Origin: Oikopleura dioica
Lineage: Eukaryota; Animalia; Chordata
Assembly (NCBI GenBank): GCA_907165135.1
Contig: OU015567.1
Coordinates: 14,570,001 to 14,634,000, forward strand
Direction: 5' to 3'
Length of the DNA stretch: 64,000 nt
This document shows, in pieces, positions 1-57,800 of this stretch (positions are counted from its first letter, which is position 1; the number at the start of each line of letters is the position of its first letter). The position numbers and the translations under genes were made by a program. A model generated the notes under the pieces. That model did not search any database. It worked only from the letters and a program-made list of their open reading frames with translations, and was not told where the DNA came from.

Positions 1-224
1 AAAAGGACAGAAACTCTTTTCCCTCAATCATTGAACAGCGGTTGTGCTTTCGGGCCCTCTCAAAGGAACTCGGACTAAAGGTCAAATCTATTTGGCTGGG
101 TCTGAAGTTGCGATGAGGGGCAACCCGAGGGGCGGAAGTTGTTTGCTGGTTGGGGAGAAAATTGGGTTGAGAAAATATGTCAAATAATAGCGGAAATGTT
201 ATTTAGAAGGTTTCCCGGGACAAT

Positions 225-1313
225 ATGCCACCCAAGAAGAAACAAGCGGTGAAAGAAACCCCATATGTATCACCAAAAGCCCCAACACCAGAATATACCC
301 AACCAAATGTTGGGGAAGATCAAAAAGAGGAAGAAGAAACGGAAGTGATGGAGAAGTCGGGAGACAACAAGACCCTTGAGCGAATGGAGAACGATATAGT
401 AGAACTTCACCGAAGAATGGCCCAACTCAACCGCAAGTTGACCTTGACGAGTCAGTCTGCAGATCTAGTATGTCCGGGGGAAATCATCGAAGCGTTAGCG
501 AAGGTAGAGGAGGAAACCGACAGATTCAAAGGGGAGAAAGAGGTATCGGTATACCAAGCGATTGCAGCCCAACAAGCATACACGGAATCCCTCACGTTGA
601 CTTTTGGACCCCCAGCGGGAATGTTGTACAAATTGTTGCGATTTTCCATCCAATCCGAGTTCCGACACTTGTCAAGAGTGGAGCAATCGGCGAAAATGTT
701 GTCACCAAACCATCATGTTTACAAGGAACTTCGAACAGTTTCAGCGTTGGTATGGGAGGTGATCAGCGACAGGAATCTGGCCTCGGATTGGGTGATAAGC
801 ATTCGGGAAAGCGTCCGGATCACCATGGAAAAAGGCTACAAGTTGGTGTTTTCAGAGCTCCTGGAGATGGTGGTTGGGGATGAAATGGTTTCGAGAAAAA
901 CAATGGAGATGAAAGTGCGGAGAGCAAGAAACTTGCTACAGCGTTTGTTTTCGGACGAAATGTTGGGAGTCAAACGTCTTCAAGAATGGATGGATGCAGA
1001 AAAGTCACCAAAGTTTACACGACGTCAGGCAATCGTGAAATTACGGGAGGTTTTCCCCTACCGAATGGAACTGCATGCTGGGAGCTACAAACTGTTGGGA
1101 TTGAGAGAAGCGGACAGAAGAATCGAAAATGGGGAGATCGAGAATTGGCCATCGGCATCGCCACCTGGATACTCCTCAGACGAGGAGCAATTGGAGACCG
1201 AGATGGAATTTGGGCGAAAGCGGCAGCGTTACGACGAAATGCCTGCCGGGAGAAGTTTGGATCAGATGTACGAAAGCCTCAAGATGAAAAGATCGGAAAA
1301 TTTGCGTTTCTAA
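225..1313 (+). CDS. Retroelement ORF1, putative Gag-like protein (362 aa)
   Basis: Long ORF directly upstream of RT, with a coiled-coil-like segment (LERMENDIVELHRRMAQLNRKL). No diagnostic motif, so the Gag call rests on position only. Confidence 0.55.
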   Translation: MPPKKKQAVKETPYVSPKAPTPEYTQPNVGEDQKEEEETEVMEKSGDNKTLERMENDIVELHRRMAQLNRKLTLTSQSADLVCPGEIIEALAKVEEETDRFKGEKEVSVYQAIAAQQAYTESLTLTFGPPAGMLYKLLRFSIQSEFRHLSRVEQSAKMLSPNHHVYKELRTVSALVWEVISDRNLASDWVISIRESVRITMEKGYKLVFSELLEMVVGDEMVSRKTMEMKVRRARNLLQRLFSDEMLGVKRLQEWMDAEKSPKFTRRQAIVKLREVFPYRMELHAGSYKLLGLREADRRIENGEIENWPSASPPGYSSDEEQLETEMEFGRKRQRYDEMPAGRSLDQMYESLKMKRSENLRF

Positions 1314-1431
1314 AAGATTCTGTCCCCCAACAATTCCTGTTAAAGCCTGTACTTAATCGTCAGAGACATCACTGAACAAGGGGAAATGGATTTTAGGCGA
1401 CATATTAGGAGCTCACATTGCATATGTTTAG

Positions 1432-3866
1432 ATGGGAAAATCGGAGAAAGATGTGGAAGTGGAGATGCAGCGTCGCTTGCAACAAGGAGAATTCAACCCA
1501 ACAGAACACCCGACAGTGGGCGCGAACCAGTTTGACCCAACACATCCAGGTGATCTGAATTTCAAAAGCGAGCAATGGGAGTTAGAGAGATGGTTAGAGT
1601 ACGGAGCCGTAGCGCTAGAATTATTTGAAAAGCTTAAGAAGGGAGAGGTTGAACCTAGTTGGGAGATGGTGAAGTTCCGAACAGAGTCGGAGTTTGTGGC
1701 AGGATCCTTTTCGAACCACCCCCAGATCTGGTTAATTTTGATTAACCAAATGCCACCGGAAGCGCGAGCGGAGATTTATCACTCAGTCTGGGAAGGAGTG
1801 AATTTATTTGATAACCTCCAGGAAGTTAAACTGTCAAAACCGGCAAGTTACAAGAGGGTAGAGTTTGGTACGTATTTCGAGCGGAACCCGGATAATAAAA
1901 ATCGTAGTCACCTACACCCAAAATCCAAAACGGATCGAACCTCCAAATATTACCCTAAAAACGTGTTGGTTCCGGTGTTTGCAAAGGGACCGCAGAGGGG
2001 TCAGCCGTTGAAGTTCAAAAACCCTGCATCGTTAATTAACCTTCATGAGTTTGTGGTGAAGCAGATTGTGGATTGGACTAAAAAGGGAGCGCTAGAAGTG
2101 TTGGGGAATCACATGCCGACACCGAGACTAACAAGTTCCATCATTGTGGTTCCAAAAAGCGGAGAGGAAAAATGGAGAGTCTGTTTTAACGGGGCACCAT
2201 TCAAGGAGTTGGAGAAGTTCTCCCAACCCTGCTCCATGGATGACTGTGCCACGGTTCTGCCTTTTTTGGAAAAAGGCATGTTAATGATGAAGGTAGATGA
2301 TAAATCGGGTTTCCACCACCTCCAGCTCGACCAATTTTCGCGAAATATGGCGGTTTGTGAATATGGGGGGATTAGTTTCAGATACAAAGCGGCTCCTTTT
2401 GGAATACCCAAAGTGCCAGGAATTTACCAAACGGTAAATTCAGTACCGGTGAATGCCCTGCGAAAGGCGGGCCACATGTGTTTTCTTTATTTGGATGACA
2501 GGTTGTTTTTGGTGAAGCCGGAGAGTAGAAAGCAAGAGCAAGAATGGAGACGAGGTGTTACTGCCCCAAAAGGTCCGATTATGGGTTTACTGCTCATGAC
2601 GGCAGTCGGTACATATATTAATCGGAAAAAGAGCGAATTAATCCCAACATCCAAGATTGAGTTCCTGGGTTTCGAGTTCAATACGGTGAAAGGAACGGTT
2701 AAGATTCCCCATGCAAAATGGACGGCATTTGTTGAGTTGGCTAGTGGGGTGAGAAGACGAAAAACCGTCACCTTCAAAGAACTAGAGAGATTGAGGGGAA
2801 AAATGTGCGCGTTTGCGATAGTTGCTACCAACATGCGGCTTTTCATCAGGCGCATTACGCAAGTATTGGTGGAGAATGAAGGAAAACAACATGTTAAGGT
2901 GACTGAGGAGTTGAGAGATGAGTTGAAAGTGTGGCTAGACTCTAAATATGTGAAGAAAGAAAGATCTTGGGTGAAAAAGGGCATTACTACGGTCGAGACC
3001 AGAGTGTACACCGATGCCAGCAACTATGCGGCAGGGATCTACATTGAGACAGAAGGGCTGGAGGTAAATGTACCCTGGGGCGAGGAGGACGCGATAAGTA
3101 GAGATTGCATTTTCCTGAAGGAAGCATGGGCAGTTTACCACGCCCTGGACGCATATGGTCACCTTCTGAAGGATAAGCGGGTTCATTTTCTTAATGACAA
3201 TATGTGTGTGGTGAGCTGTTTCGAACACGGGAGTCGCAAGAGCCCAGCCCTAACCCGACTTATCAGAATGATACACCAAAAAGCATGCGACCAAAATGTA
3301 GAAATGATGATGTCGTGGGTGAGTACGAAAGACCAATTGGCGGACGAGGCGTCCAGGGAGGTAGACGTGAAAGAAGCAATAGTAAGGAGAGCAGTGTTCC
3401 ACCAAATAGAGACCATCGTTGGTTTTCCAATGGAAGTGGATGGAATGGCGGCAGTAGGGAATGCGAAATGTGAAAAATACATTTCGATGAGAAGAGAACA
3501 CACGGCATGGAAACATGATTTTTCCGTGCTCACGATTTCGAGGGTAAAAACCTTTGGATTTTCCCTCCCCAAACAATTCTTAATGAAACCTACAAACATC
3601 TTGCAGAGTTTGCACAAAAGGAGAAGTGGGCGTTGTTGTTGTTGGAGTACGAGACTATATCACCAATCTGGGCAGATGTAGCAGGAAAGGAAAGTTTCAC
3701 TCGGGTGGAGTTGGGAGAACTAGAAGTACCAGTGCTGTTTCCAGCAATGGAGGAGCACCCGGAATGGGGCTACTGGAAAATACCAGAGCGAGCTAATCCG
3801 ATTCTTTTAGTGCACAAGCCGCCACAACACCCCCAACGACGAAAACGCTTGAAGAAGCTATGGTAG
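1432..3866 (+). CDS. Reverse transcriptase - RNase H - DNA N6-adenine methyltransferase-like polyprotein, frame break near 3519-3523
   Basis: RT motifs KVDDKSGFHHL, PFGIPKVPGIY and FLYLDD. RNase H motifs VYTDAS, LKEAWAV, LNDN and QLADEASR. The MT-like EVDGMA..NAKC..YIS continues in the next frame as LWIFPPQ...WALLLLEY to TAG at 3864-3866. Confidence 0.88.
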
Positions 3867-4036
3867 ATATGGAGACAATCAGGAGACAGCTCTGGAGAAT
3901 TTGGTGTGCTGAAAAGCAATATTGCGGAAATTGACAAACCACTAAAACACCCAACTATCCTCATTTTATTTCGCTGATAAGCTGGCGGAACGAGTAAAAA
4001 ACAGTAATGTTTTAGACTGATTTGGTGAAAAAAGAA

Positions 4037-4520
4037 ATGGAGGAAGTTCGGCGGATCGCGGCGCAATACTCGCGCACCCAACGACAACGAATGATTGATC
4101 TGCACAATGATGCTAATGTGGTGATTGAGAAGATGGACAGGGAGATTCGGGGCAGATGTCGGGAGACTGAGCTGATGGAATTGGCGGAAGAAGGCGTGAA
4201 AAGATTTACGAGCTTCGCAAATAAATTCTGTGCTAGCTTTCCCATGTATTTTCCCCTGTACAACGAAATGATCTGGAGTTTGCGAGAGGCCACTGCGGCA
4301 CGGCGGGTAGAATTCTCAAAATACCAAAATCTCTCCCGTTTCAACAAAGAAGTATTGAGGAGTCTGGAGATTTTTACCACCACTCATGTATCCGCCTCGA
4401 TATGTTCGATTTGGGAGTTGGAGATTTTAGGAGAGATCTAACTCGCATGAGGGAAGGCCGAACCCTAATTCCACCAACACTAGACTAAAAAGAAACCACC
4501 AAACTGCCAAACAAAAATAA
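4037..4520 (+). CDS. Retroelement ORF3, unknown helical protein; predicted intron 4388-4430
   Basis: ATG 4037 follows an acceptor AG at 4014-4015. Unspliced, the ORF ends at 4441. Removing the 43-nt GT-AG intron extends it in frame to TAA 4518-4520. Confidence 0.6.
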
Positions 4521-4555
4521 GCCGCCAAAATTGCTAACCCATCGCCTTTTTAGAC

Positions 4556-5851
4556 ATGAGTTTCGGAGAAATGGTACGGACATCGAGTTTCCACGCGAAA
4601 GCGTCAAAAACGAATGTGAAAAGAATGGAAGTTGGGGGAACCACCACCGCCAAGATCGCGCAAGAACAATACGAAACCATCATGGCGAAAAATATGGAGA
4701 ACAACCATTTTTCAACGCTGTACCGACGAATGAAGGAGATGGAGAGACGTTGCCAGGTCATGACGGAGCAGGGCCTAGAAAATCAAGACGAACTAGACAA
4801 CTTAAGAGCGCTCCGCAAGGAAAGAACTCGAATAGCTGGTATTTTGGAGAATGGGGGCAAACCGTCACGAAATGAAGAACTGGCGTACGCCAAGTCCAAG
4901 AACATCGATGAAGATATCAAAGAACTACAGCGGCAAGATCTGGCTCTTATGGTGGAGAATGAGAAGATGTTTGAGAAGGTGGAAAATGCCAAAAAATCCC
5001 TCAAAGACTATGCCCTAAACAACATGAAAACCACCTATGCATACAAACAAAATGATGAATTCTACAAGGTCGGGTCGGGAAGCTGCTTGCTACAAATGGA
5101 TCGTGAGGATGAGAGACAGGTGGGAGCGGCGTATGTGGCGTTTTTCAAAGAAGCAGACCTACGAAAGCTCACCCGAGAAGAAGTGACCCCCATTGTCAAA
5201 AGATACGCCGAGGCAATCCCTCCTTCGAACCCAGACCGACAGAAAGTCATGGATTGTTGGAATTTGTTGCGAGACCACCCAGACTGCCCACGCTTCCAGT
5301 TCTACGAGAAGGTTAAGCACACGCTTACGGATCGACATCGGGATGAATTTGTGGAGAAGTTCAACACGGTGTACGATAATGAGGAGCATCGGGCGGACCT
5401 GCAGAATAGTATGGATGAGAAAACCTGTGCCCGACAATTACTAGTCCAAAAAAGGACAACATACCACCTCTCGGACGCGCTAATGAAGGAGTACAAGGCT
5501 TACAAGGATCGAATGCCAAAAGATGAATTGGAGAAGTTGGGGATAACGGACGAGATGATCCGGACGTATGAAAATGGTCAGAAGAAGAAGAAAGAAGGGA
5601 AGAAAAATCACCAAAGGGATCGTCAACACTACAAAGGAAACCGACGACACAATAGGGGCGACCGTGATGGTAGGGATAGATATTACGACCGACGGCAAGA
5701 CCGACGAGATGGTGGGGGAAGGAGATATTATGACAAGCCGTACGACCGCCAAAGAGACTACGGGAAACCATACTGGAAGGAAGGAAAACAGGACCGAAAG
5801 GACTTCCGATCAAACCATGTTGGAAAAGGAGAAAATGGAGGAAAAAACTGA
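4556..5851 (+). CDS. Retroelement ORF4, unknown 431-aa protein with coiled coil and an R/D/Y/G-rich basic tail
   Basis: Uninterrupted ORF. The tail RHNRGDRDGRDRYYDRRQDRR suggests nucleic-acid binding. Confidence 0.7.
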   Translation: MSFGEMVRTSSFHAKASKTNVKRMEVGGTTTAKIAQEQYETIMAKNMENNHFSTLYRRMKEMERRCQVMTEQGLENQDELDNLRALRKERTRIAGILENGGKPSRNEELAYAKSKNIDEDIKELQRQDLALMVENEKMFEKVENAKKSLKDYALNNMKTTYAYKQNDEFYKVGSGSCLLQMDREDERQVGAAYVAFFKEADLRKLTREEVTPIVKRYAEAIPPSNPDRQKVMDCWNLLRDHPDCPRFQFYEKVKHTLTDRHRDEFVEKFNTVYDNEEHRADLQNSMDEKTCARQLLVQKRTTYHLSDALMKEYKAYKDRMPKDELEKLGITDEMIRTYENGQKKKKEGKKNHQRDRQHYKGNRRHNRGDRDGRDRYYDRRQDRRDGGGRRYYDKPYDRQRDYGKPYWKEGKQDRKDFRSNHVGKGENGGKN

Positions 5852-6006
5852 ACCCGACACAAAGGAAGAAACCAATTGTCTGTATACATAAAAAATCTGT
5901 GAATCTGGTGACCCAACACACTGTGCTTCCCACCACGTTATTATTGTAAAATTGGAGTACTGTAAATCTAGTGAAAACAGAATGATATCCAGCAATATTT
6001 AGATTG

Positions 6007-7140
6007 ATGGGGCGGAAGAAAAAACCAAACGCTTTCTCCAAAGACTCGGACAGGATGGATTGGATGGAGAAAAGATGGGGAACCTTCAAAAAGGAAAGGA
6101 AAAAGCCAGTCATCAACGCCAAGACGGTCAAACAATTCCTGGAAGTTGTGGACGTCCCAACACCAACACGACCAGCAGTTTATGGACAATGGGGAGGTAC
6201 CATCACCCGAGTGTTGGAGGAGGAAAGAGGAATACCGATGACAAAACAGGCGGCGATGGAGATATCCAGGTGGGCAAACACTCAGTCACGAGCATTGGCC
6301 AAGACTCAGCTGTTTGAGTCCAAATCAAGTCCCACCATGAGCCAAGAACGTTTTCTGAGAGTCTGCAAAGAATTTTGGAACAAAGAATGGAAAGACAACA
6401 CCTACAAAACGACCGCGCTGGCGGTTTATCTGGCGGGAAGTACTGGAGCGAGATTGGGGGAAGTGCTGGGACTGTGGATTGAAGATTTGGAGAAGTCGGT
6501 GGACAACGGCTGCACATTCATACGATTCCCCCTACGAGTATCGAAAACCAACGCGAACAAATCACGGCCCGAAAGCCTAATTCTCAGTGTGAGTGGAAAA
6601 GAGGAGATCCCGATACTGCGATGGATGACTGGCATCTTGAATGGACGAGAGAAAGGACTCTTGTTCCCAGGCACCACCAATGCGAAAATCAATGCTCATC
6701 TGAAAGCTCTTTACAAGAAGATGAACTGGAAGAACCCCCCAACTGGACACGGGCTCAGAGGCACGTTTGTGGTGAATAGTTTGGACGCTGGGGCGAGCAA
6801 GACAGACATTGTAAATCAATGCAGATGGCAGACGTTCCAAATGATTGACAGATACAGCAACCAGCACAGACAATGCACCACCAAAGGACCAGCACATGTT
6901 ATCGCAGAGCTGAAACAAGTGGAAGAAGGGAGACGAATCGAAGAAAGGAATAGGGAGCACAAAAAGAGATCCGAAATGCTTGAGGCATTGCTTCCAAAGA
7001 AACCGACAATCCAGTTGGCGATTCGTGCCCCAACAAAGACGGTGGCGTGTCAAACGGACCCGGAAGTGACAGAAGATAAGAAGGTCATGGAAAATGATCC
7101 GTATTACCAGCGATGGCAAAAATATTTTGAAACGCACTAA
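6007..7140 (+). CDS. Tyrosine recombinase (YR)
   Basis: Catalytic set R (TGARLGEV), K (SKTN), HxxR (GHGLRG), W (CRW) and Y (MIDRYS) in the expected order. Confidence 0.92.
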   Translation: MGRKKKPNAFSKDSDRMDWMEKRWGTFKKERKKPVINAKTVKQFLEVVDVPTPTRPAVYGQWGGTITRVLEEERGIPMTKQAAMEISRWANTQSRALAKTQLFESKSSPTMSQERFLRVCKEFWNKEWKDNTYKTTALAVYLAGSTGARLGEVLGLWIEDLEKSVDNGCTFIRFPLRVSKTNANKSRPESLILSVSGKEEIPILRWMTGILNGREKGLLFPGTTNAKINAHLKALYKKMNWKNPPTGHGLRGTFVVNSLDAGASKTDIVNQCRWQTFQMIDRYSNQHRQCTTKGPAHVIAELKQVEEGRRIEERNREHKKRSEMLEALLPKKPTIQLAIRAPTKTVACQTDPEVTEDKKVMENDPYYQRWQKYFETH

Positions 7141-7201
7141 AAAGCTGTTGGGAGATTAAAAATGTGGAGATAGGATGTTTTTTCAGGGGAATTATTTTAG
7201 A

Positions 7202-8264
7202 ATGATCACATTCCAAGTATTCGAAAATCATGAGTCGGTGTACACGTTGGGGGCCCAACTGAGAGCCGGAATGGTGATGAAAGTGGTGGGACAAGATGGG
7301 GATGTGCAGAACGCAAAAGCGAATGAACTCATGAGAGCAGCCATTCACCCAATCACCACGTCGCTCATTTCTCAAATCCTTCAGGACTGGAGAAGATGCA
7401 AGGCAGACCCGCACGTGCTGGCGGAACGGAAGTGGACCAAAGCGGTGAAGGAAGCAGCTATTACGAGATGGCTGGAGAACCCCGAATGTCTGAGCAAAGA
7501 AGAGAAGCGTTCATGGTTTGGAAGGGTGATGGAAACGGTGACAAAATCAGGAGTAGCAATCGCGATCGGAGATAGGGAGACATCGTGGGCGAAGCATGCC
7601 ATGGAGTCCACGTTCATCGAGTACGTGGAAGATGATAACGCAAATAGGGCCATCCCCGGTAAGAAGCTCCGAGAGAGACTCAAATACCTGACCCTACACA
7701 CCCATCTCTACACGAAGGCGATAAAAGAACAGACCGCGTCGGTGAGATCGATCTGGAAAGTGGTGGCGACAGCAGAGCCCTTGAAAAATAATGAAACCAT
7801 CAAATGCTTCTCCGGAACGTTCTCGGAGATCAATGATGTGGTGGCGAAAGCGCTGCCAAGAGCAGAGGCAGCAGGGAGAGTAGGGATGGCGTACTTGTAC
7901 GCAGAAGAAGTTCCACCGGCGTACAAACCCCTAGTAATCACCTACCGAGCGGGCCACTTCATGCGACTGAATGTGAGAAACAGAACGTGGACTTGGACAG
8001 CCATCGAAGCAGGTAACACTAGGCTTAACCCAGCCCGGTAATAAAGCCATCCTAGGACTAACGGGAGGCATAGAAAATTTGGTTGAAGGAGAAAGAGGAA
8101 GCCACATCCATTTCCGAAAGGCAAACGAAGTTGTGATTCTGGCAGTTGGGAGCGCTGAGGACAAAACAACAATTGAACAATGGTGGCAACAGCAAATTCA
8201 ACGTGATCCTCGACTCCTGGAAAAACCAATTATGTACCCTGCAAGCCTGTACTCGGACGAATAA
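7202..8264 (+). CDS. Retroelement ORF6, unknown ~339-aa protein; predicted intron 8013-8055
   Basis: ATG 7202 lies 1 nt after the acceptor AG at 7199-7200. A 43-nt GT-AG intron joins it in frame to the 8056-8264 segment. AATAAA follows at 8270-8275. Confidence 0.65.
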
Positions 8265-8363
8265 GTTTGAATAAATTGAAAATAAGGTGACAAAAACACT
8301 CCAAAACGCATACTTTGAGTCATGAACCAGACCAGGGATATCCAACAACGGAGTAAGGTAGTA

Positions 8364-8868
8364 GAAAAATTGTATCCAACTGTTGTATTTACGTCGATTA
8401 CTATGATAATCGACGTAATTATGAATACAATAAAATATATTTCCCAGAATAACCATCAAACCCTACAGATCCAATACGTGACCCCACTAGCCCGAGCGTG
8501 AGAACGAGTGTGGAAAGTTGGGGGAAAAAGAAGCAAAAGTTTCTAGAACGAGTGTTGTTGAGAGGGCGCCCGCGCAGTGGGGTGTCAGTTTCACTTTTAC
8601 GAAGATGACGAAAAGGTAAAAAATAGAAAAATTCCTCATTCCGGCCAGTTTAGTAGAAACTGAGCTGTAGAATTCGAGAAGTCAAGAAGGCAATTCTAAA
8701 ACCCACCCGCAAAGAAACAGGGAAAGGGAATGGTTGTAGGGCGATCGAGCAGGAGTTTCTTTGCTTCACCCAACCCCAGAAGAGCGTATAGGAGTATTTT
8801 TGCGTAGTAAGAGACGGTATCCGAAAAATTGTATCCAACTGTTGTATTTACGTCGATTACTATGATAA
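8364..8868 (+). repeat. Split direct repeats B1 (8364-8409) and B2 (8823-8868) around a putative A2 segment; 12-6-12 palindrome at 8389-8418
   Basis: Identical 46-mer gaaaaattgtatccaactgttgtatttacgtcgattactatgataa occurs twice. B1 continues into the right arm taatcgacgtaa and B2 does not. Confidence 0.85.
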
Positions 8869-27117: not shown

Positions 27118-27588
27118 AAGGAAGTCGATGTTTCCTGCCGACTAGAAATCACTGTAGAATCAAAAAAATGACAATCTCGCTCTTCCAAAAAATAAAAATT
27201 GTTTCTGATGCGTTCTGTAACTAACTGTAACTGTAGCTCACTACCTATTTCCCCTTCTTCACTATTCTATTTAAAACTTTAAAAGGTAACATGACATTCA
27301 TTTTCGCTCATTTTCTAGAAATTTCAAACTGATAGATGCAAAAAATAAAACAAACATTGAATTCGTAAAATGCTCTTTTTCGTGTCAAAATTAAAGGATT
27401 TCGGTCGTTTATATAGGCACCGGAAATCGGTGTATGTCTTTTTCGCGAGATTTGATTGGCTCAAATTCATGTGATAGGTTCGAGCGCCCCACCCGCGCCG
27501 ATTTTTCAGCGCCCCTCACACCTGATTTCGGGCAACTGCTGCTTCTCGCGAAAGAGACTGATTTTTCACCAATTCGTATCTTTTAGAA

Positions 27589-34643: not shown

Positions 34644-35619
34644 ATGCTCAGAGCTCCAATAAGTGGAAATAAGCGCATTTGGCTTGATTTTTCGATTTCA
34701 AACTCGCCGGCAAAGCGCGTCAACATTTCCTTATTCGATAACGCTTATCAAGGATCGTTTTTATGTTTTGTCACTTAGACCTGAAAGCTTTAGGCGAAAT
34801 TAACGCATTTCAAAAACATGCAAAAGCCCCGACTGCGAAAATCTTTGAAAAAATAAAATCGGAACCGGGATGGATGATCGGCCCGATAAAAGGGATGGTC
34901 GAAAAAGATTTTTTACTCACAGGAAGCAGGGAAGATCCGAGATCCGCTGGAGTTATTAAGTTTATCGATTATGAGAGGCTGATATTCGACTCGTCAAGGT
35001 TATTTCGAATTTTTGATGAAAAAAAAAACTAATTATTCAAGTGATTCTCATCCGAATTTCTTCTTGGGTCATCATAACTCCGGTCTGGTGTCGATTGAAA
35101 AGGATAGTGCTGGCGTGGAGCTGTTAGTATCCCTCGGCGCGTGCCCCTATTTCGACCGCGAGCCCCTTGGAAACCTCCCTTCCTCACGTGAACGGGTTGT
35201 GCTTGGAGTTGTCGAAGACCTGAATAGCATTCAAGATTTTCACGGAATGGTAGTAGCCGAAGAAACGGGCCTGCCGGTCAGTGGTTCAGTTGAAGTTATT
35301 AACGCCGGTGTGCCAAATGAGGATTTATCCGAAGCCGAGCTGAAAGAGCTCAACAAAAGAATATCAAACTATCAATTTGAAGATTTGAAGCCGAGGTAAA
35401 AGAGCTTTTCTCATTTCGCCGAATAAAATCACCTTTAGAAATCGACTCTTTTACAAAGTTGTTTCTGGAAGTTTGGATTTAATTACTTTCCGAGACATTT
35501 ATAAATGGACTACCTCTTGGGGAATCATTTACGGATTCATCATTTTCCTGATTTATTCCTGGCAAAAACAATCTAAAAAGTTCAACAGAATCGACTGGGC
35601 CGCAGCCACGGCCAGATAA
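34644..35619 (+). CDS. Divergent cyclophilin-like protein with a C-terminal hydrophobic anchor, multi-exon
   Basis: By-eye alignment to the cyclophilin fold: KRIWLDFSISNSPAKRVNISLF, NFFLGHHNSGLVSI, ERVVLGVVEDLNSIQDF and VEVINAGV. Ends in WGIIYGFIIFLIYSW. Confidence 0.6.
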
Positions 35620-35649
35620 ATTAAAAATAATGATTTTTGAACTTTCAGA

Positions 35650-38600
35650 ATGTCAAAAAAGGCGAAAGCCTTAGATAAGTCGCCGAAATCGAAAGTGGCA
35701 TCGAAAAAACAAGCCCAGAAGAAAGCGTCTTCGATTACAAAATGGGGAGTCGGTTGTTTTCTTCTCGCCCTGGTCAGTGGTTTGCTGAATAAATTCCATG
35801 TGGAAGTCTTGTTTGAAAACGAAAAGCACTTTTCGCATCTGTCGACGATGGAGCGCGATATGGCCTTTCGAACAGAAATGGGGCTGTATTACTCTTACTA
35901 CAAGGTTTGTTTTCAGTAAAAATTCTATCCTAAATATTCATTGATTACAGGACATGGTCGACGCAGAATCTTGGTGGGCCGGCTTCAATGGAATGATCAA
36001 TGACGACGTCAGCGAGCATCCAAAAACCATCAATGTTCTCAAACGGTTCAACCTTTGGCCGGAGCTTTTCTGGGGCACTGTGAAGCGCGTTTACAACCAC
36101 GTGACCAAAACGCTCAAAATCAAGACCCAGGATTGCTGGCAAATCAACCGTGGTGAAGGCAAGACGCCCGTTCAAAGCTGCGAAGGTCTAGGAGATGATC
36201 ACTACTTCTATATCTGGCCGATTTGGTGGCTGACTGGCTTCTTGATGTTTGGCGTGTTCGTTTACGGTAAGATACCCTTTCAAAAGGGCCACGATTATTA
36301 TCATGAATTAGGCGCAACTGTGTCCGAAAGTCTCTGGGGTGGCATCATTTCTGTCTGCTGCTACTTTTTCAACCATGGCGAAGCGACGCGTGTCATGTGG
36401 ACTCCGCCACTCCGCGAGAGCTGGTCCTTTCCCTTCCTCATCATTCAACTTTTACTCGTTACGAAAATCATCAAAGCTCCATCCACCAGTTCATGCTTGT
36501 TTATTCCCCTTGTCGTGCTCACTTCGCTATTTATGATCACTTGGCAATTTGCGCAGTTTGCCCTGCTCACTCAGGTAGAAAATAATAGATTGTCAGTGTT
36601 GACCTCTCATAATGATTTGATTCGTAATTTATTTGGGATACGCGTTTCGGCGACTATTGTGCCTTCATCAGTCCCTAGTACAGATATAAATTTCACAGCT
36701 CAGAAAAAAGAAAGAATACTCTCACCTAGAGTTGGACAATTTCGAATGAGATAGAAAGTTGAAAACAAAAGATGAAAACTCGCTTTCGCGGCAGATGTAA
36801 TGGAGCGCCAGAGAAAGCGAGTTTCATTCCTATGTTCTTCCACACTTTGAGGTGTCCAAAATTCAGGGAACTCTTTGACAAATATTTAAGTGAGCCAGAC
36901 ACTCCTAAATACAAACCTACGACTTCTAGAGCTAGAATTAAAACAAATTTCTGCTTCAAACACAAACTCGTTTCTGTTATCTCCAATCAACCGTACTACA
37001 AAGACCGTACTCTATGTGAAGCGTTTTCAATCAAATTAAAAGATCCAAGCTTAAATAAGCAGATCAAGTTCGCTGAAGTTAAATTTCTGTAATGGAGCAT
37101 TTGAAACTCGCTTTCTCTGGCGCTCCATTACATCTGCCGCGAAAGCGAGTTTTCATCTTTTGTTTTCAACTTTCTATCTCATTCGAAATTGTCCAACTCT
37201 AGGTGAGAGTATTCTTTCTTTTTTCTGAGCTGTGAAATTTATATCTGTACTAGGGACTGATGAAGGCACAATAGTCGCCGAAACGCGTATCCCAAATAAA
37301 TTACGAATCAAATAGAAAATAATAACTTGAATTACGAGATTAAACATATTCTAAGACGGCATCCGTTATGGCTACTTACTTGCTGGGCTTCATTGGCACC
37401 GGCAAAATGAGTCTCATCGTCAAAGGCCAGGCAGCAGCTCTAGCAATCAATTACGTTCTTCAATGTGGAAATTCTATGCTCCTTACTTCGTTCTTCGCGT
37501 CTTCTCTTCTATCTGTAAATTTTAATTGAGTATCAATTAGCTTCTATTTCTTTCTCAGGTCATTATTCTCCTTCACTTCGACAGCAAGTTCGAAAAGCTC
37601 AACATCTTCCTGCGAATCCCAATTTGGCTCGTCCTCTGGGTTGCCGGCACCCTCTCAATCAAATATGCAATCGCCTCCGCTTTGCAAGTCACCGATGATT
37701 CGCATATCTTCGACATCTTCCGTGCAAAGTTTTCGACATACAAGAACTTCCACACTCAGCTCTACACATGTGCGAAAGAATTCGACTTCTTGGAGTGGGA
37801 AACTGTCGAGAAACTGACAAAAACTGCTTTGATTCCTGCTGTCGTTGCGGTTTTAGTTGTTTTAGGAACGACTATTTTATACAGGTAAATTTTCTGAAAA
37901 TGCTTCCATTGACCGTTTTTGAAGAGAATACTCCTGGTGGAAAAACCCTGAGTCTACTCCAGCAGAAGTTGTATCCACTGGCTCCGAAAAGTCAAAGCCG
38001 CTAGCCGCGGAACTCTACACATGCATCCAGGGCCTTGCTTTCACAAGTTTAGCAATTATGATCATGCGTCTCAAGCTTTTCATGACTCCGCAGCTCTGCA
38101 TTGTTGCCAGGTATATCCTCACTTTCAGATCATTTTTCAACTATTTCCCAGCCTTCTCGCCTCTCAGAAAGTCTTTTCTTTCATTCCCCGTGAGCGCCAA
38201 GTGTCTCTTCTTATTCTTTTCCTCGCTATTGGTGGCTTCACCGGTGTCAGTAACATTCAAACGCAATGGGGCAAAATCGGCGAGTACGAAAACCCGCAGC
38301 AAGAAGACCTCCTCGAGTTCATCCGCGATTCCGGTAAAATTGCCAAGGATGCTGCTTTTGCTGGTTCGATGCCAACCATGGCCACGGTTAAGCTAGTCAC
38401 GAAGAGAAAAATTGTCAACCACCCGCATTACGAAGACACCGAGCTAAGAGAAAGAACCTATCAAGTCTACACGATGTTTTCAAGACGACCAGCAGAGGTA
38501 ATCTTTTTCCTTCTTTCAGACAACTCATTTTTTCTTAAGCTTGTGCACAAAGCCCTAATGGACTTGCAAGTCGACTACTTCATCCTCGAAGAAGGCTGGT

Positions 38601-54875: not shown

Positions 54876-57800
54876 ATGGCGGAAAAGCAACCTCCTCGTG
54901 GGCGAGGTCGAGGCCGTCGAGGGCCGACAACTCAAATCCCTCAACCTCCAGCAGCGGAAAGCACCTCCTCTGACGAAGGAATCTCATCTCAGCCGGCCCC
55001 ACAGCAGAGGCCTGCCGCTACTTCAACCTCAAGCTCGAGCGGTCCTCCGAGAGCTGGACGCGCTTCATCACGTGGTCCTGGACGTATCGCCGGCCGCGGT
55101 GCGTCACGTGGACGAGGACGAACCGCTGCTATGGCAAAGAGTGCCACAGAAACCAAAAAGGAAGCTGAGGACTCTACATATGCCGCTTCCAGCGGTTCTC
55201 AGCTGATTCCTCAGACCAACACGAAATCTTCCACCTCTGACGAACAGGTTCCTCACGCTCAAGGAATGACCCCTCAAGACCACCATGTCTATCTCGCCCG
55301 CCGCCCAGGTTATGGAGTGAACTCTGTAGCGAAGCTCGACGTCGCCTGCAATTTTTACAAGTGCAAGGGATCACCGTAAGTCCTGAAATTGACTAACTCG
55401 TCTGTTATCTCCCTTTAGACCCAAGAAAATCTACCTCTATCGGCTCCGTTCTGAACTCACTGAGGAGCGTGACGGAGCAAGAGCTCCAATTTTGGACTAC
55501 GAACGAGCTATGGAGTTCTTCGGGATATTCGAAAAGGTGTTCTTCGATCAAAGTTCCAGCTCTTCTTCTGACTCTCTTGAATCCACCTCTACTGACGAAG
55601 TGCGCCCAAGCACTGGACCTGTGGCCTATTACGATGGCAAGACGCTCTTCTACTCAAATGTAGACAATTTAGCACAGATTCAGGTACAATATAGAAATCG
55701 TATTCGTCCACAAGTTAAAATGTAATTTAAGGAAAGCATTGATTACGACGTCGACTATCCCAGTTGCCGATCGATCCGGGATAAAGAAAAACCATTTCCA
55801 GTTACCGTCACCAAACTGAAGGTGCTTTCCGATATTGTCGAAATCTTCCGACAACGACAAGGGCAGCAAATGGACCCGATCCTTTTGCAGTACTTTGAGG
55901 TGCTTTTGAAGCATTCGCTTTACCGAAAGGTAAGAGTAGTTTGACTTTTCTCTTCCTTGATTTCATTTCTAGCACTACACCCGAGTCGGCACATCATTTT
56001 ACATGCTCAACCAAAACATCCGACCGCTCAACTGCGTAATTCCTGCGAAAGAAGTCTTCACAGGTTTTCACCTTCAGATGAAGCACATCTCTTCTGGCTT
56101 GGCGATCCAAGTGAAGGACAAGTGCGGCGTCTTCTACAAAAGCATGCCGCTTCATCAGTTCCTCGTGAGTGCCACACTATGAGCTTATGAAAATTAAGAA
56201 ACTTTTTCAGTGCGATTATTGGAACAGCGAGGATCCACTCTACCCTGAGTTCTGGAGGAACTCCTACAATCTGGTCGAGTCCAACAAGATCGTCAGGAAA
56301 TTGAAGGTCAACATTGTCTCCAAGACCGGCTCCAATGGCAGAACCAAGGTCATCAAGGAATTGACCGATCAAAGTGCAGCGAACCTCTGCTTTGAAGATC
56401 AAAATGGCCGAAAGATGAATGTGGCAGATTACTTCATGAAGAAAGGGGAGGTTCTCAACCACCCCCAACTTCCATGTGTTTCCACGGGCAACAAGCACTA
56501 CCCTGAGTATTACCCGATGGAATGCTGCCACGTGGTTGCAAGACAACCAGTGAAAGGTTGGTTAAATGAATTGATTTCTTTTTTATATCTTTTCCGAGAA
56601 AATATTTCAATTAACAAATTCTTTAGGACTCTTGGATCCAAACGCCATCTCGGCATTGATCCGCGTTGCTGCCAAGCCTGCTCCTGAGACCTTCAACGCA
56701 ATCAAACAGAACATGCATACGGCGATGCAGGCAATTGGAGAAGATATGCAGAATATCGACATGAGCGTCGACAAAAGCATGGTCAAAACGCCTGCACGAG
56801 TTCTTCAAGCTCCAGACATGCACTATGGCAATGGGAAGCAACATCCAAATAATGGAACGTGGCACCCTAGAAGTTTCATCACTCCGAAGAAGATCGACAA
56901 TTGGGGCGCCTGCATTATCTCCCGCCGCGGTCATCGAGGAGGGCAGGACACCGTTCGTAGAGCCATCGATGTTCTCTATAACGCTGGACAAAAACTCGGC
57001 ATGGAAGTGAACTTCCTCGCCGATCGGTCTATGCCGTACGAACTCCAGCCTCATCAATTGGACGAGTTCTTGAAGCACTGCTCTGATAGCAAGTACGAGC
57101 TAGTCCTTGTTGTTCTCGACGGCAAGAACACGGAAGAATACGCTCAAGCGAAATTCCTCGCCGAGCGAAAATACCCTGGTCTTCTGACGCAGTGTGCACA
57201 AATGAAGACCCTTCAGCGCATCAATGAGCAAAGCGCGACGATGATCCTTATGAAGATCAACGCGAAGCTCAACGGTCAGAACGCTGAATGCGATTTGACG
57301 CTGGCGAATCCGACGGGCGGTGTTTTGTTTACCCACGACCACCCGGTCCTTGTTCAAGGTAAACTTTTTTCTTTCTTTGCAGTCGAAATAATCTTGTTCT
57401 CAGGTCTCGAAATGAGCGTCCTCCCTGGCCAGGAATCTTTGGTCGGTATGGCTTCTTCTTACGACCAGAACGCATCGATGTACACGATGCAATCTCGAAT
57501 GACGAGCAGCAACGCTCACTGTCTTGAATTGTTCGATATGCAAGTACAGAGCATCAAGACCTACTACAAGATGACCGGCAGGAAGCCCAAGTCGATCATC
57601 TTCTTTCGCCCGGGTGTGAACGAACACCAAATCAGCTCGACCGCCGGTTATGAGTGCACCAAGATTCGAGAAGCTTGCGAAACTCTCGAAGATAACTACC
57701 GGTACGTTCATTTTCTTTTATTTCAGTATCCTATTCTATGTTAGGCCGAAGATCACCTACATCATGGCCACCAAGATGCACGCGACCCGATTCTGCGCAA

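Follow-up and report, generated by a model that had tools for sequence, protein, structure and literature searches.

A 15.6-kb, apparently Ngaro-like retroelement of Oikopleura dioica carries an acceptor-like motif before each of its seven genes

The window analyzed in this study is a stretch of 64,000 nucleotides (nt; positions 1 to 64,000) from chromosome 2 of Oikopleura dioica (assembly OKI2018_I69; OU015567.1:14,570,001-14,634,000), and its first 8,868 positions hold part of a tyrosine recombinase (YR) retroelement. The element has seven same-strand, non-overlapping genes, namely open reading frame 0 (ORF0), ORF1, the reverse transcriptase/RNase H (RT/RH) gene, ORF3, ORF4, the YR gene, and ORF6, and an acceptor-like motif (TTTAG followed by adenine, written here as TTTAG/A) precedes every one of them. 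All of its features in the window lie on the plus strand unless otherwise stated. The remaining 6.7 kb of the element are located upstream of window position 1 and are numbered according to L026, one of two chromosome 2 loci (L026 and L025) that are identical to the window over 11,313 nt; in L026, the identity starts at offset 9776. From its left edge (L026:3086; 6.7 kb before the window start) to its right edge (window position 8868), the whole element spans L026:3086-18644, which amounts to 15,559 nt (15.56 kb). An initial annotation of this DNA had placed the element at 195-8275, a span that covers only part of it, as the terminal repeats give a length of 15.6 kb and a start outside the window. 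The six separate, non-overlapping ORFs counted in that annotation are indeed separate within the window, and ORF0 upstream brings the total for the element to seven.

Split direct repeats in the order A1...B1-A2-B2 bound the element. Repeats A1 (L026:3086-3380; outside the window) and A2 (8402-8696) are each 295 nt long and 99% identical, and A2 is flanked by two 53-nt repeats, B1 (8357-8409) and B2 (8816-8868; the right end of the element), which are 94% identical to each other. No inverted terminal repeats were found at the element ends. A perfect palindrome (8389-8418; no strand assigned), consisting of 12-nt arms (TTACGTCGATTA and TAATCGACGTAA) and a 6-nt spacer (CTATGA), extends across the B1/A2 junction; the left end of the element opens with the right arm of this palindrome, and the right end closes with the left arm and the spacer. 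The palindrome is a candidate for the core site of YR recombination at the circle junction. The upstream 6.7 kb (L026:3086-9776) hold A1, a leader of approximately 700 nt, and ORF0.

The YR gene (6007-7140; 377 amino acids [aa]), which is a separate gene in the public annotation, matched the Pfam family Phage_integrase (E value of 2e-10; score of 41 bits, above the cut-off of 27). The frame 1 ORF of the RT/RH gene (1432-3681) matched RVT_1 above the gathering score (E value of 3e-9) and RT_RNaseH below the cut-off (0.013). Because it carries both RVT_1 and Phage_integrase, the element is a YR retroelement of the DIRS order. Membership in the DIRS1-like elements, which are <6 kb in length (PMC3266345), was ruled out, given that the repeats are direct rather than inverted, that seven separate ORFs are spread over 15.6 kb, and that pol and YR do not overlap. 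Judging from its split direct repeats, its gene order, and the absence of a detectable methyltransferase (MT) domain, the element appears to be Ngaro-like. Repeats of the form A1...B1-A2-B2 have been reported in Ngaro, PAT, and VIPER-like elements (PMC6681497), and Ngaro-like elements lack an MT domain and usually have non-overlapping ORFs (PMC3266345). A Pfam scan of 1432-3681 and the precomputed Pfam record of the full-length relative P0001 showed no match to an MT domain.

The initial annotation had regarded separate ORFs as a departure from the DIRS/PAT norm. Since separate ORFs are usual in Ngaro-type and VIPER-type elements (PMC3266345), this property is less unusual here and does not set the element apart. 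What is unusual is its size (15.6 kb against <6 to 7 kb), its seven genes, the orphan ORF0, the introns, and a conserved acceptor before every gene. Ngaro-like and PAT-like elements share with it the pairing of RT/RH with YR, the position of RT before YR, the A1...B1-A2-B2 repeats, the non-overlapping ORFs, and the lack of a detected MT domain; however, they are approximately 4 to 7 kb long with three or four ORFs, whereas this element has seven ORFs in 15.6 kb, including the orphan ORF0 before the ORF in the gag position, along with short introns and one acceptor motif per ORF.

The RT/RH gene had been taken for one intact ORF, but its frame is broken. Homology to relatives persists in frame 1 only up to approximately position 3522 and is found in frame 3 for the C-terminal part (3519-3866). 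The switch from frame 1 to frame 3 falls between approximately 3516 and 3556 and is seen in this copy only, the gene being continuous in all of the approximately 20 relatives. An intron at 3544-3606 was considered and ruled out, as every relative is collinear there without a gap; this collinearity through the region indicates a disruption of the frame and not an intron. Because the interval 3516-3556 includes two 5-nt homopolymer runs, the frame change is possibly an assembly error, and the disruption may thus be either real or an artifact of assembly.

ORF0 (L026:4086-9338; 1751 codons), which lies between A1 and ORF1, corresponds to the public gene g8095 (1727 aa; P0015), the model of which has four predicted short introns in ORF0. 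Its counterparts in relatives indicate that it belongs to the element: in L001, the large ORF that precedes ORF1 and RT is homologous to ORF0 (26% identity over 645 aa; E value of 4e-54), a weaker match is found at the same position in L006 (a relative from the O. dioica Y region), and L011 matches the ORF0 C terminus. Relatives of ORF0 numbered 12 among 1.84 billion representative proteins, and no match to it was found in Pfam or PDB sequence searches. Structure prediction for the ORF0 core with AlphaFold gave a poor model (pLDDT of 48), and Foldseek returned no match below an E value of 0.01; its top matches were RNase-H-fold proteins, which may provide a weak lead.

ORF1 (225-1313; 362 aa) occupies the usual gag position, is a separate gene in the public annotation, and has counterparts upstream of RT in L001, L006, L011, L012, and L013. 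ORF3 (4037-4441; 134 aa) has a weak homolog after RT in L001, and Pfam searches with ORF1 and ORF3 were empty. A candidate 43-nt intron in ORF3 (4388-4430; GTATCC...TTTTAG) would shift the ORF3 stop to 4518-4520, and its removal may be the source of the 33-nt gap between ORF3 and ORF4 described in the initial annotation. ORF4 (4556-5851; 431 aa) is represented in the public annotation by a model that begins at a later ATG (4625; 408 aa). Its last 85 or so residues (5590-5850) form a low-complexity tail rich in Arg, Asp, Tyr, and Gly, which suggests a nucleic-acid-binding (nucleocapsid-like) role. ORF6 (7202-8264) encodes 339 aa once an annotated 43-nt GT-AG intron (8013-8055; GTAACA...CCTAG) is taken out, the unspliced frame being 7202-8041. 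The proteins of g8099.t1 and g8099.t2 (P0014 and P0013) match both ORF6 exons at 100%, and an additional in-frame ATG is present upstream of the ORF6 start, at 7175. Pfam and PDB sequence searches with ORF4 and ORF6 were empty.

An AATAAA (8270-8275) is located 6 nt past the ORF6 stop, upstream of the B1-A2-B2 module. This signal had been pointed out previously and is present, although the 3' end is not the only place with this motif, further copies occurring at 1894, 4220, 8040, and 8429. AATAAA is absent from all five spacers that separate the ORFs in the window, and the spacer before ORF6 has an ATTAAA at 7155. In the public annotation, ORF0, ORF1, ORF4, YR, and ORF6 are called as separate genes, with RT and ORF3 uncalled; the annotated genes (g8095 to g8099) share one strand and have <500 bp between neighbors, the exception being the interval that holds the uncalled RT and ORF3. 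The stop-to-ATG spacers measure 415, 118, 170, 114, 155, and 61 nt.

The motif of ORF0 reads ccTTTTAG/A-ATG, with its AG ending at L026:4084, and abuts the first ATG of this ORF. Within the window, the motif is found at 202-207 for ORF1 (AG at 205-206; ATG at 225, +18 nt), at 1427-1432 for RT, where it reads TTTAG/A(TG) (AG at 1430-1431; ATG at 1432, +0), at 4011-4016 for ORF3 (AG at 4014-4015; ATG at 4037, +21), at 4549-4554 for ORF4 (AG at 4552-4553; ATG at 4556, +2; with CTAAC at 4534-4538), at 5998-6003 for YR (AG at 6001-6002; ATG at 6007, +4), and at 7196-7201 for ORF6 (AG at 7199-7200; ATG at 7202, +1). The TTTAG and ATG positions given for these six ORFs in the initial annotation, as well as that of the CTAAC, were each correct on re-reading. 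Each of the seven AGs has an A after it, and no other ATG comes between an AG and the ATG of its ORF. The plus strand of 195-8275 has nine TTTAGs, six of which end no more than 22 nt ahead of the six ATGs (binomial P = 1.5e-9). It has exactly six TTTAGAs, and every one of them lies 0 to 21 nt before the first ATG of an ORF. Among the 191 other ATGs, only 3 have a TTTAG as close. In the whole element (15,559 nt), seven of nine TTTAGA sites precede the seven ORFs (binomial P = 3e-13), and the remaining two (L026:4334 and L026:9355) are the acceptors of two g8095 introns with GTAAGT donors 72 to 76 nt upstream, a point that is partly circular because the g8095 gene models are predictions. By these counts, the presence of an acceptor-like motif ahead of each ORF is not random.

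A trivial origin would be that T-rich spacers, together with a TAG stop at the opening of an ORF, mimic acceptors by chance. The TAG of the motif is the in-frame stop opening ORF1, RT, and ORF3 (three of the seven sites), and these sites therefore partly reflect an ORF-boundary effect; at the other four sites, however, the TAG is out of frame. In addition, TTTAGA is found elsewhere in the 15.6 kb only at the two intron acceptors, and six of seven TTTAGs in the window spacers fall within the 20% of spacer sequence that adjoins an ATG.

Relatives of the element bear on the same explanation. A search with the RT yielded a small clade of 12 proteins, all in YR-containing loci, which include one O. 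dioica Y-region copy and marine metagenome contigs; fourteen further relative loci were obtained from Joint Genome Institute (JGI) metagenomes. With the motif defined as TTYAG or TYTAG within 22 nt of an ORF start, 43% of the ORF starts in the pooled relatives have it, compared with 9.6% of other ATGs (P = 4e-20) and 11% of minus-strand ORFs (P = 3e-6), and enrichment per locus was observed in five RT families. A looser definition, under which any YAG within 12 nt counts, gives a background of 17 to 30% and is not discriminating, leaving most loci non-significant, a point in favor of chance resemblance. Spurious minus-strand ORFs share the boundary effect but not the enrichment, a point against it.

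The motif is also kept across families with 31 to 60% RT identity, which likewise speaks against chance. In relatives with 50 to 60% RT identity, the RT starts read tttagATGGGA (L012) and ttctagATG (L011), and other ORFs follow ttcag; families with 31 to 39% RT identity have long runs of same-strand ORFs, most of which have their ATG directly after a T-rich AG and an A. When five family-E loci are aligned, TAGAATGG is the same in all of them, whereas the upstream spacer drifts with indels. Conservation of the motif alongside drifting spacers, the pattern that the initial annotation had proposed looking for in other copies, accordingly holds in distant relatives. On this evidence, a chance origin of the motif is highly improbable. 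A conserved CCCTAACTGA block containing a branch-point-like CTAAC was also noted approximately 50 nt upstream of the RT acceptor in three of the five family-E loci (L016, L022, and L019).

Spliced-leader (SL) trans-splice sites of O. dioica are unpaired AG acceptors that are usually followed by adenine (PMC6389100), and the seven sites of the element (7/7 AG/A) are in line with this rule. Given this fit at all seven sites, SL trans-splicing is the best reading of the motif. The explanation that we favor, with a probability of about 0.5, is that the locus holds a structurally complete, recently inserted 15.6-kb Ngaro-like element whose seven genes would be expressed via SL trans-splicing by the host. 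A single O. dioica SL serves both monocistronic genes and operons (PMC1488885, quoting Ganot 2004), and upstream cistrons of Oikopleura operons are without AATAAA (PMC1488885); intercistronic regions in O. dioica are short (PMC1488885; PMC7986045). The internal spacers of the element, which are free of AATAAA, resemble such upstream cistrons.

Host genes in the window provide a direct comparison. The acceptors cited in the initial annotation for STAG, DPY19L, and a zinc finger (ZnF) gene exist at 27579, 35641, and 23737, respectively, and Pfam confirms Dpy19 and STAG. At a host operon junction (35617-35650), the upstream stop is followed by 29 nt containing ATTAAA and then by ctttcag/aATG of the Dpy19 gene; the 29-nt gap reported between the upstream stop and the DPY19L acceptor is real. 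The element thus shares with O. dioica SL operons the same-strand cistrons, the T-rich AG/A before the start codon, and upstream cistrons without AATAAA, a likeness known here from DNA sequence alone. It differs from them in that the cistrons are those of a mobile element and in that its spacers (61 to 415 nt) exceed the usual ≤60 nt (median of approximately 31).

Expression by SL trans-splicing would begin with a genome-length RNA transcribed from a promoter in or near A1. An unprocessed fraction of this RNA would be the template for reverse transcription, and the existence of an unspliced template would fit the fact that ORF0 and ORF6 have kept short introns. The remaining RNA would be cut at the unpaired acceptors by SL trans-splicing, as in host operons, to yield capped monocistronic mRNAs in which the AUG of the ORF comes first, and the last mRNA would end at the AATAAA at 8270.

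The same acceptors could also serve retrovirus-like alternative cis-splicing, in which one donor in a 5' leader would be joined to the seven acceptors to give nested subgenomic mRNAs with a shared leader exon. We regard this as unlikely, although the acceptors have the form of ordinary O. dioica 3' splice sites, and TTTAG/A is also found at two annotated cis introns of ORF0. As AG is followed by A at these two cis-intron acceptors, this feature is no specific mark of trans-splicing. Candidate donors are present in the leader (L026:3182, 3300, 3514, and 3624), among them donor-like sites in or near A1 such as AAG/GTAAAA at L026:3300, and in the YR spacer (5946 and 5962), so that cis-splicing is possible at these places, and in O. 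dioica the Tor3a env mRNA is produced by cis-splicing from the long terminal repeat (LTR) to an acceptor (PMC4402516). However, the leader donors are weak (GTAAAA and GTGAGA) compared with the GTAAGT of the annotated introns of the element. No GTRAG-type donor occurs in the spacers before ORF0, ORF1, RT, ORF4, and ORF6 (five of seven), and the 112-nt spacer upstream of the ORF4 motif has no GT at all. Where the SL is abundant, an acceptor thousands of nt away from the nearest donor is a textbook SL substrate; moreover, ORF0 and ORF1 also have an acceptor, which would be needless for a gag-type first gene.

Less probable still are internal promoters for several or all ORFs, in which case the T-rich-AGA-ATG block would be a promoter, an initiator, or a translation-context element. 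Such promoters have precedents in this species, as the Tor3b and Tor4b env RNAs begin at them (PMC4402516), cryptic ones occur in host operons, and the male-specific promoter motif TCTAGA sometimes overlaps the AGA of SL acceptors (PMC6389100). The sequence AGA-ATG also gives an A at position -3, and the ORFs are annotated publicly as separate genes. The motif of the element is TTTAGA, however, rather than TCTAGA, and the other two TTTAGAs in the element are intron acceptors. The male-specific TCTAGA promoter is itself disfavored as the meaning of the motif: it lies 40 to 50 nt upstream of the transcription start, which would place the start inside the ORFs and exclude their ATGs, and it is absent before every internal ORF.

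In the element, TCTAGA, which is the core-promoter element of O. dioica spermatogenesis, is present at L026:3226 (inside A1), at L026:3902 and L026:4045 (in the leader before ORF0), and, as the A2 copy, at window position 8542, and nowhere else. A TATA box (TATATAAG) is located at L026:3927, and the TCTAGA at L026:3902 and this TATA box would both predict a start near L026:3955. From the A1 copy of TCTAGA, transcription would be expected to begin within A1, which the split-repeat replication model needs.

Apart from the donor sites and the partial boundary effect described above, several observations weigh against expression by SL trans-splicing. Operons in O. dioica have been defined by a spacing of ≤60 bp (PMC7986045) and, for this assembly, of ≤500 bp (PMC11067885); the spacers of the element fall inside the latter definition but outside the former, and their excess over host operon junctions counts against the label "operon" in its strict sense. 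Exact-protein look-ups for transcript contigs returned the genome record only or nothing, and no SL-joined or spliced transcript was among the results. The element appears to be present as a single copy in the assembly, which, together with the disrupted RT frame, implies that this copy may be inactive. No motif enrichment was detected in the decayed Y-region relative L006. A provisional pattern for the SL 3' end had no match in the window or the loci, a result that is uninformative because the pattern is provisional and the loci are genomic. The proposal of the initial annotation that many proteins are expressed from one transcript by means of the host SL consequently stands in part: the motif is non-random, conserved in relatives, and consistent with the host SL rule, but the ORFs number seven, the RT is frame-disrupted, and the spacers are longer than those of a typical operon.

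Larger gene arrays were found among the relatives. L002 has 13 ORFs of ≥90 codons between position 6900 and its B-x-B module, 9 of which adjoin the motif (P = 9e-13), and L007 has 18 same-strand ORFs. As this layout recurs in distant relatives, such a mode of expression may have let the clade build up many accessory genes. More broadly, and tentatively, at a little under even odds, we propose a clade of giant YR retroelements built as SL-resolved operons in marine, probably appendicularian, genomes, with seven cistrons in the present element and at least 13 same-strand ORFs in metagenomic relatives; in such a clade, unpaired acceptors would lift the limit on coding capacity, and families would swap accessory genes. 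A 3' module similar to that of the O. dioica element is present at L002:21166-21546 (and also in L003 and L005; RT 36% identical), where direct repeats of 55 nt stand 326 nt apart. A search of L002 for an A1 repeat within the 21 kb upstream of its B1-x-B2 module found none, which may mean that the L002 element is longer than 21 kb or that its contig is incomplete. Another relative (L019:590-5741) carries a 177-aa ORF and a truncated RT in two tandem copies, 2870 nt apart.

In the open-access texts that were searched, no retroelement was described as being resolved in the manner of an operon. Bdelloid rotifers, the hosts of Terminons, also use SL trans-splicing. Terminons resemble the present element as very long retroelements with many co-oriented accessory ORFs and differ from it in having a Penelope-like RT, a telomere association, and no YR (cited in PMC5408684). 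The trypanosome elements VIPER and SIRE are likewise YR retroelements with A1...B1-A2-B2 repeats in hosts that place an SL on every mRNA; however, they have three ORFs and protist hosts in which trans-splicing is obligatory for all genes, so that no special adaptation is involved (PMC6681497). The O. dioica Tor elements (Ty3/gypsy with env) have the same host and express an extra gene through a subgenomic RNA, with an acceptor upstream of env in Tor3a, but they are LTR elements with one extra gene that is expressed by cis-splicing from the LTR or from an internal promoter, with no SL reported (PMC4402516). The closest precedent for SL use is the Caenorhabditis elegans Ty3/gypsy element Cer1, which produces an SL1 trans-spliced 2.4-kb RNA (PMC3315495). 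As proposed for the present element, a subgenomic RNA of a retrotransposon receives the host SL, whereas the RNA of genome length has to bypass the splice sites; in contrast, Cer1 has one SL site near the 5' end, a single gag-pol ORF, and no resolution of multiple cistrons (PMC3315495). The initial annotation had stated that no such design was known, and Cer1 qualifies this statement with respect to an SL on retrotransposon RNA, leaving it in place to the extent that Cer1 has one site only.

Retrotransposons normally have two or three overlapping genes per RNA, which they express through frameshifting, as polyproteins, or from one spliced subgenomic RNA. If this clade is expressed by SL trans-splicing, it would be the first mobile element organized as a eukaryotic operon, and the usual limit on the coding capacity of retrotransposons would be removed. 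This organization could explain the growth to seven or more independent genes, including one for an orphan protein of 1751 codons. It would also mean that some of the "operons" counted in O. dioica annotations are mobile elements; genes g8095 to g8099 fit the ≤500-bp operon definition used for this assembly, under which parts of the element would pass for a host operon.

An Rfam scan of the window gave no match. The host genes of the window, in addition to STAG and Dpy19, include one for a CP2/grainyhead factor, which lies on the opposite strand immediately past the right end of the element. A host exon with Argonaute/Piwi domains (ArgoL2, Mid, and Piwi) is located at 56632-57744, approximately 48 kb from the element.

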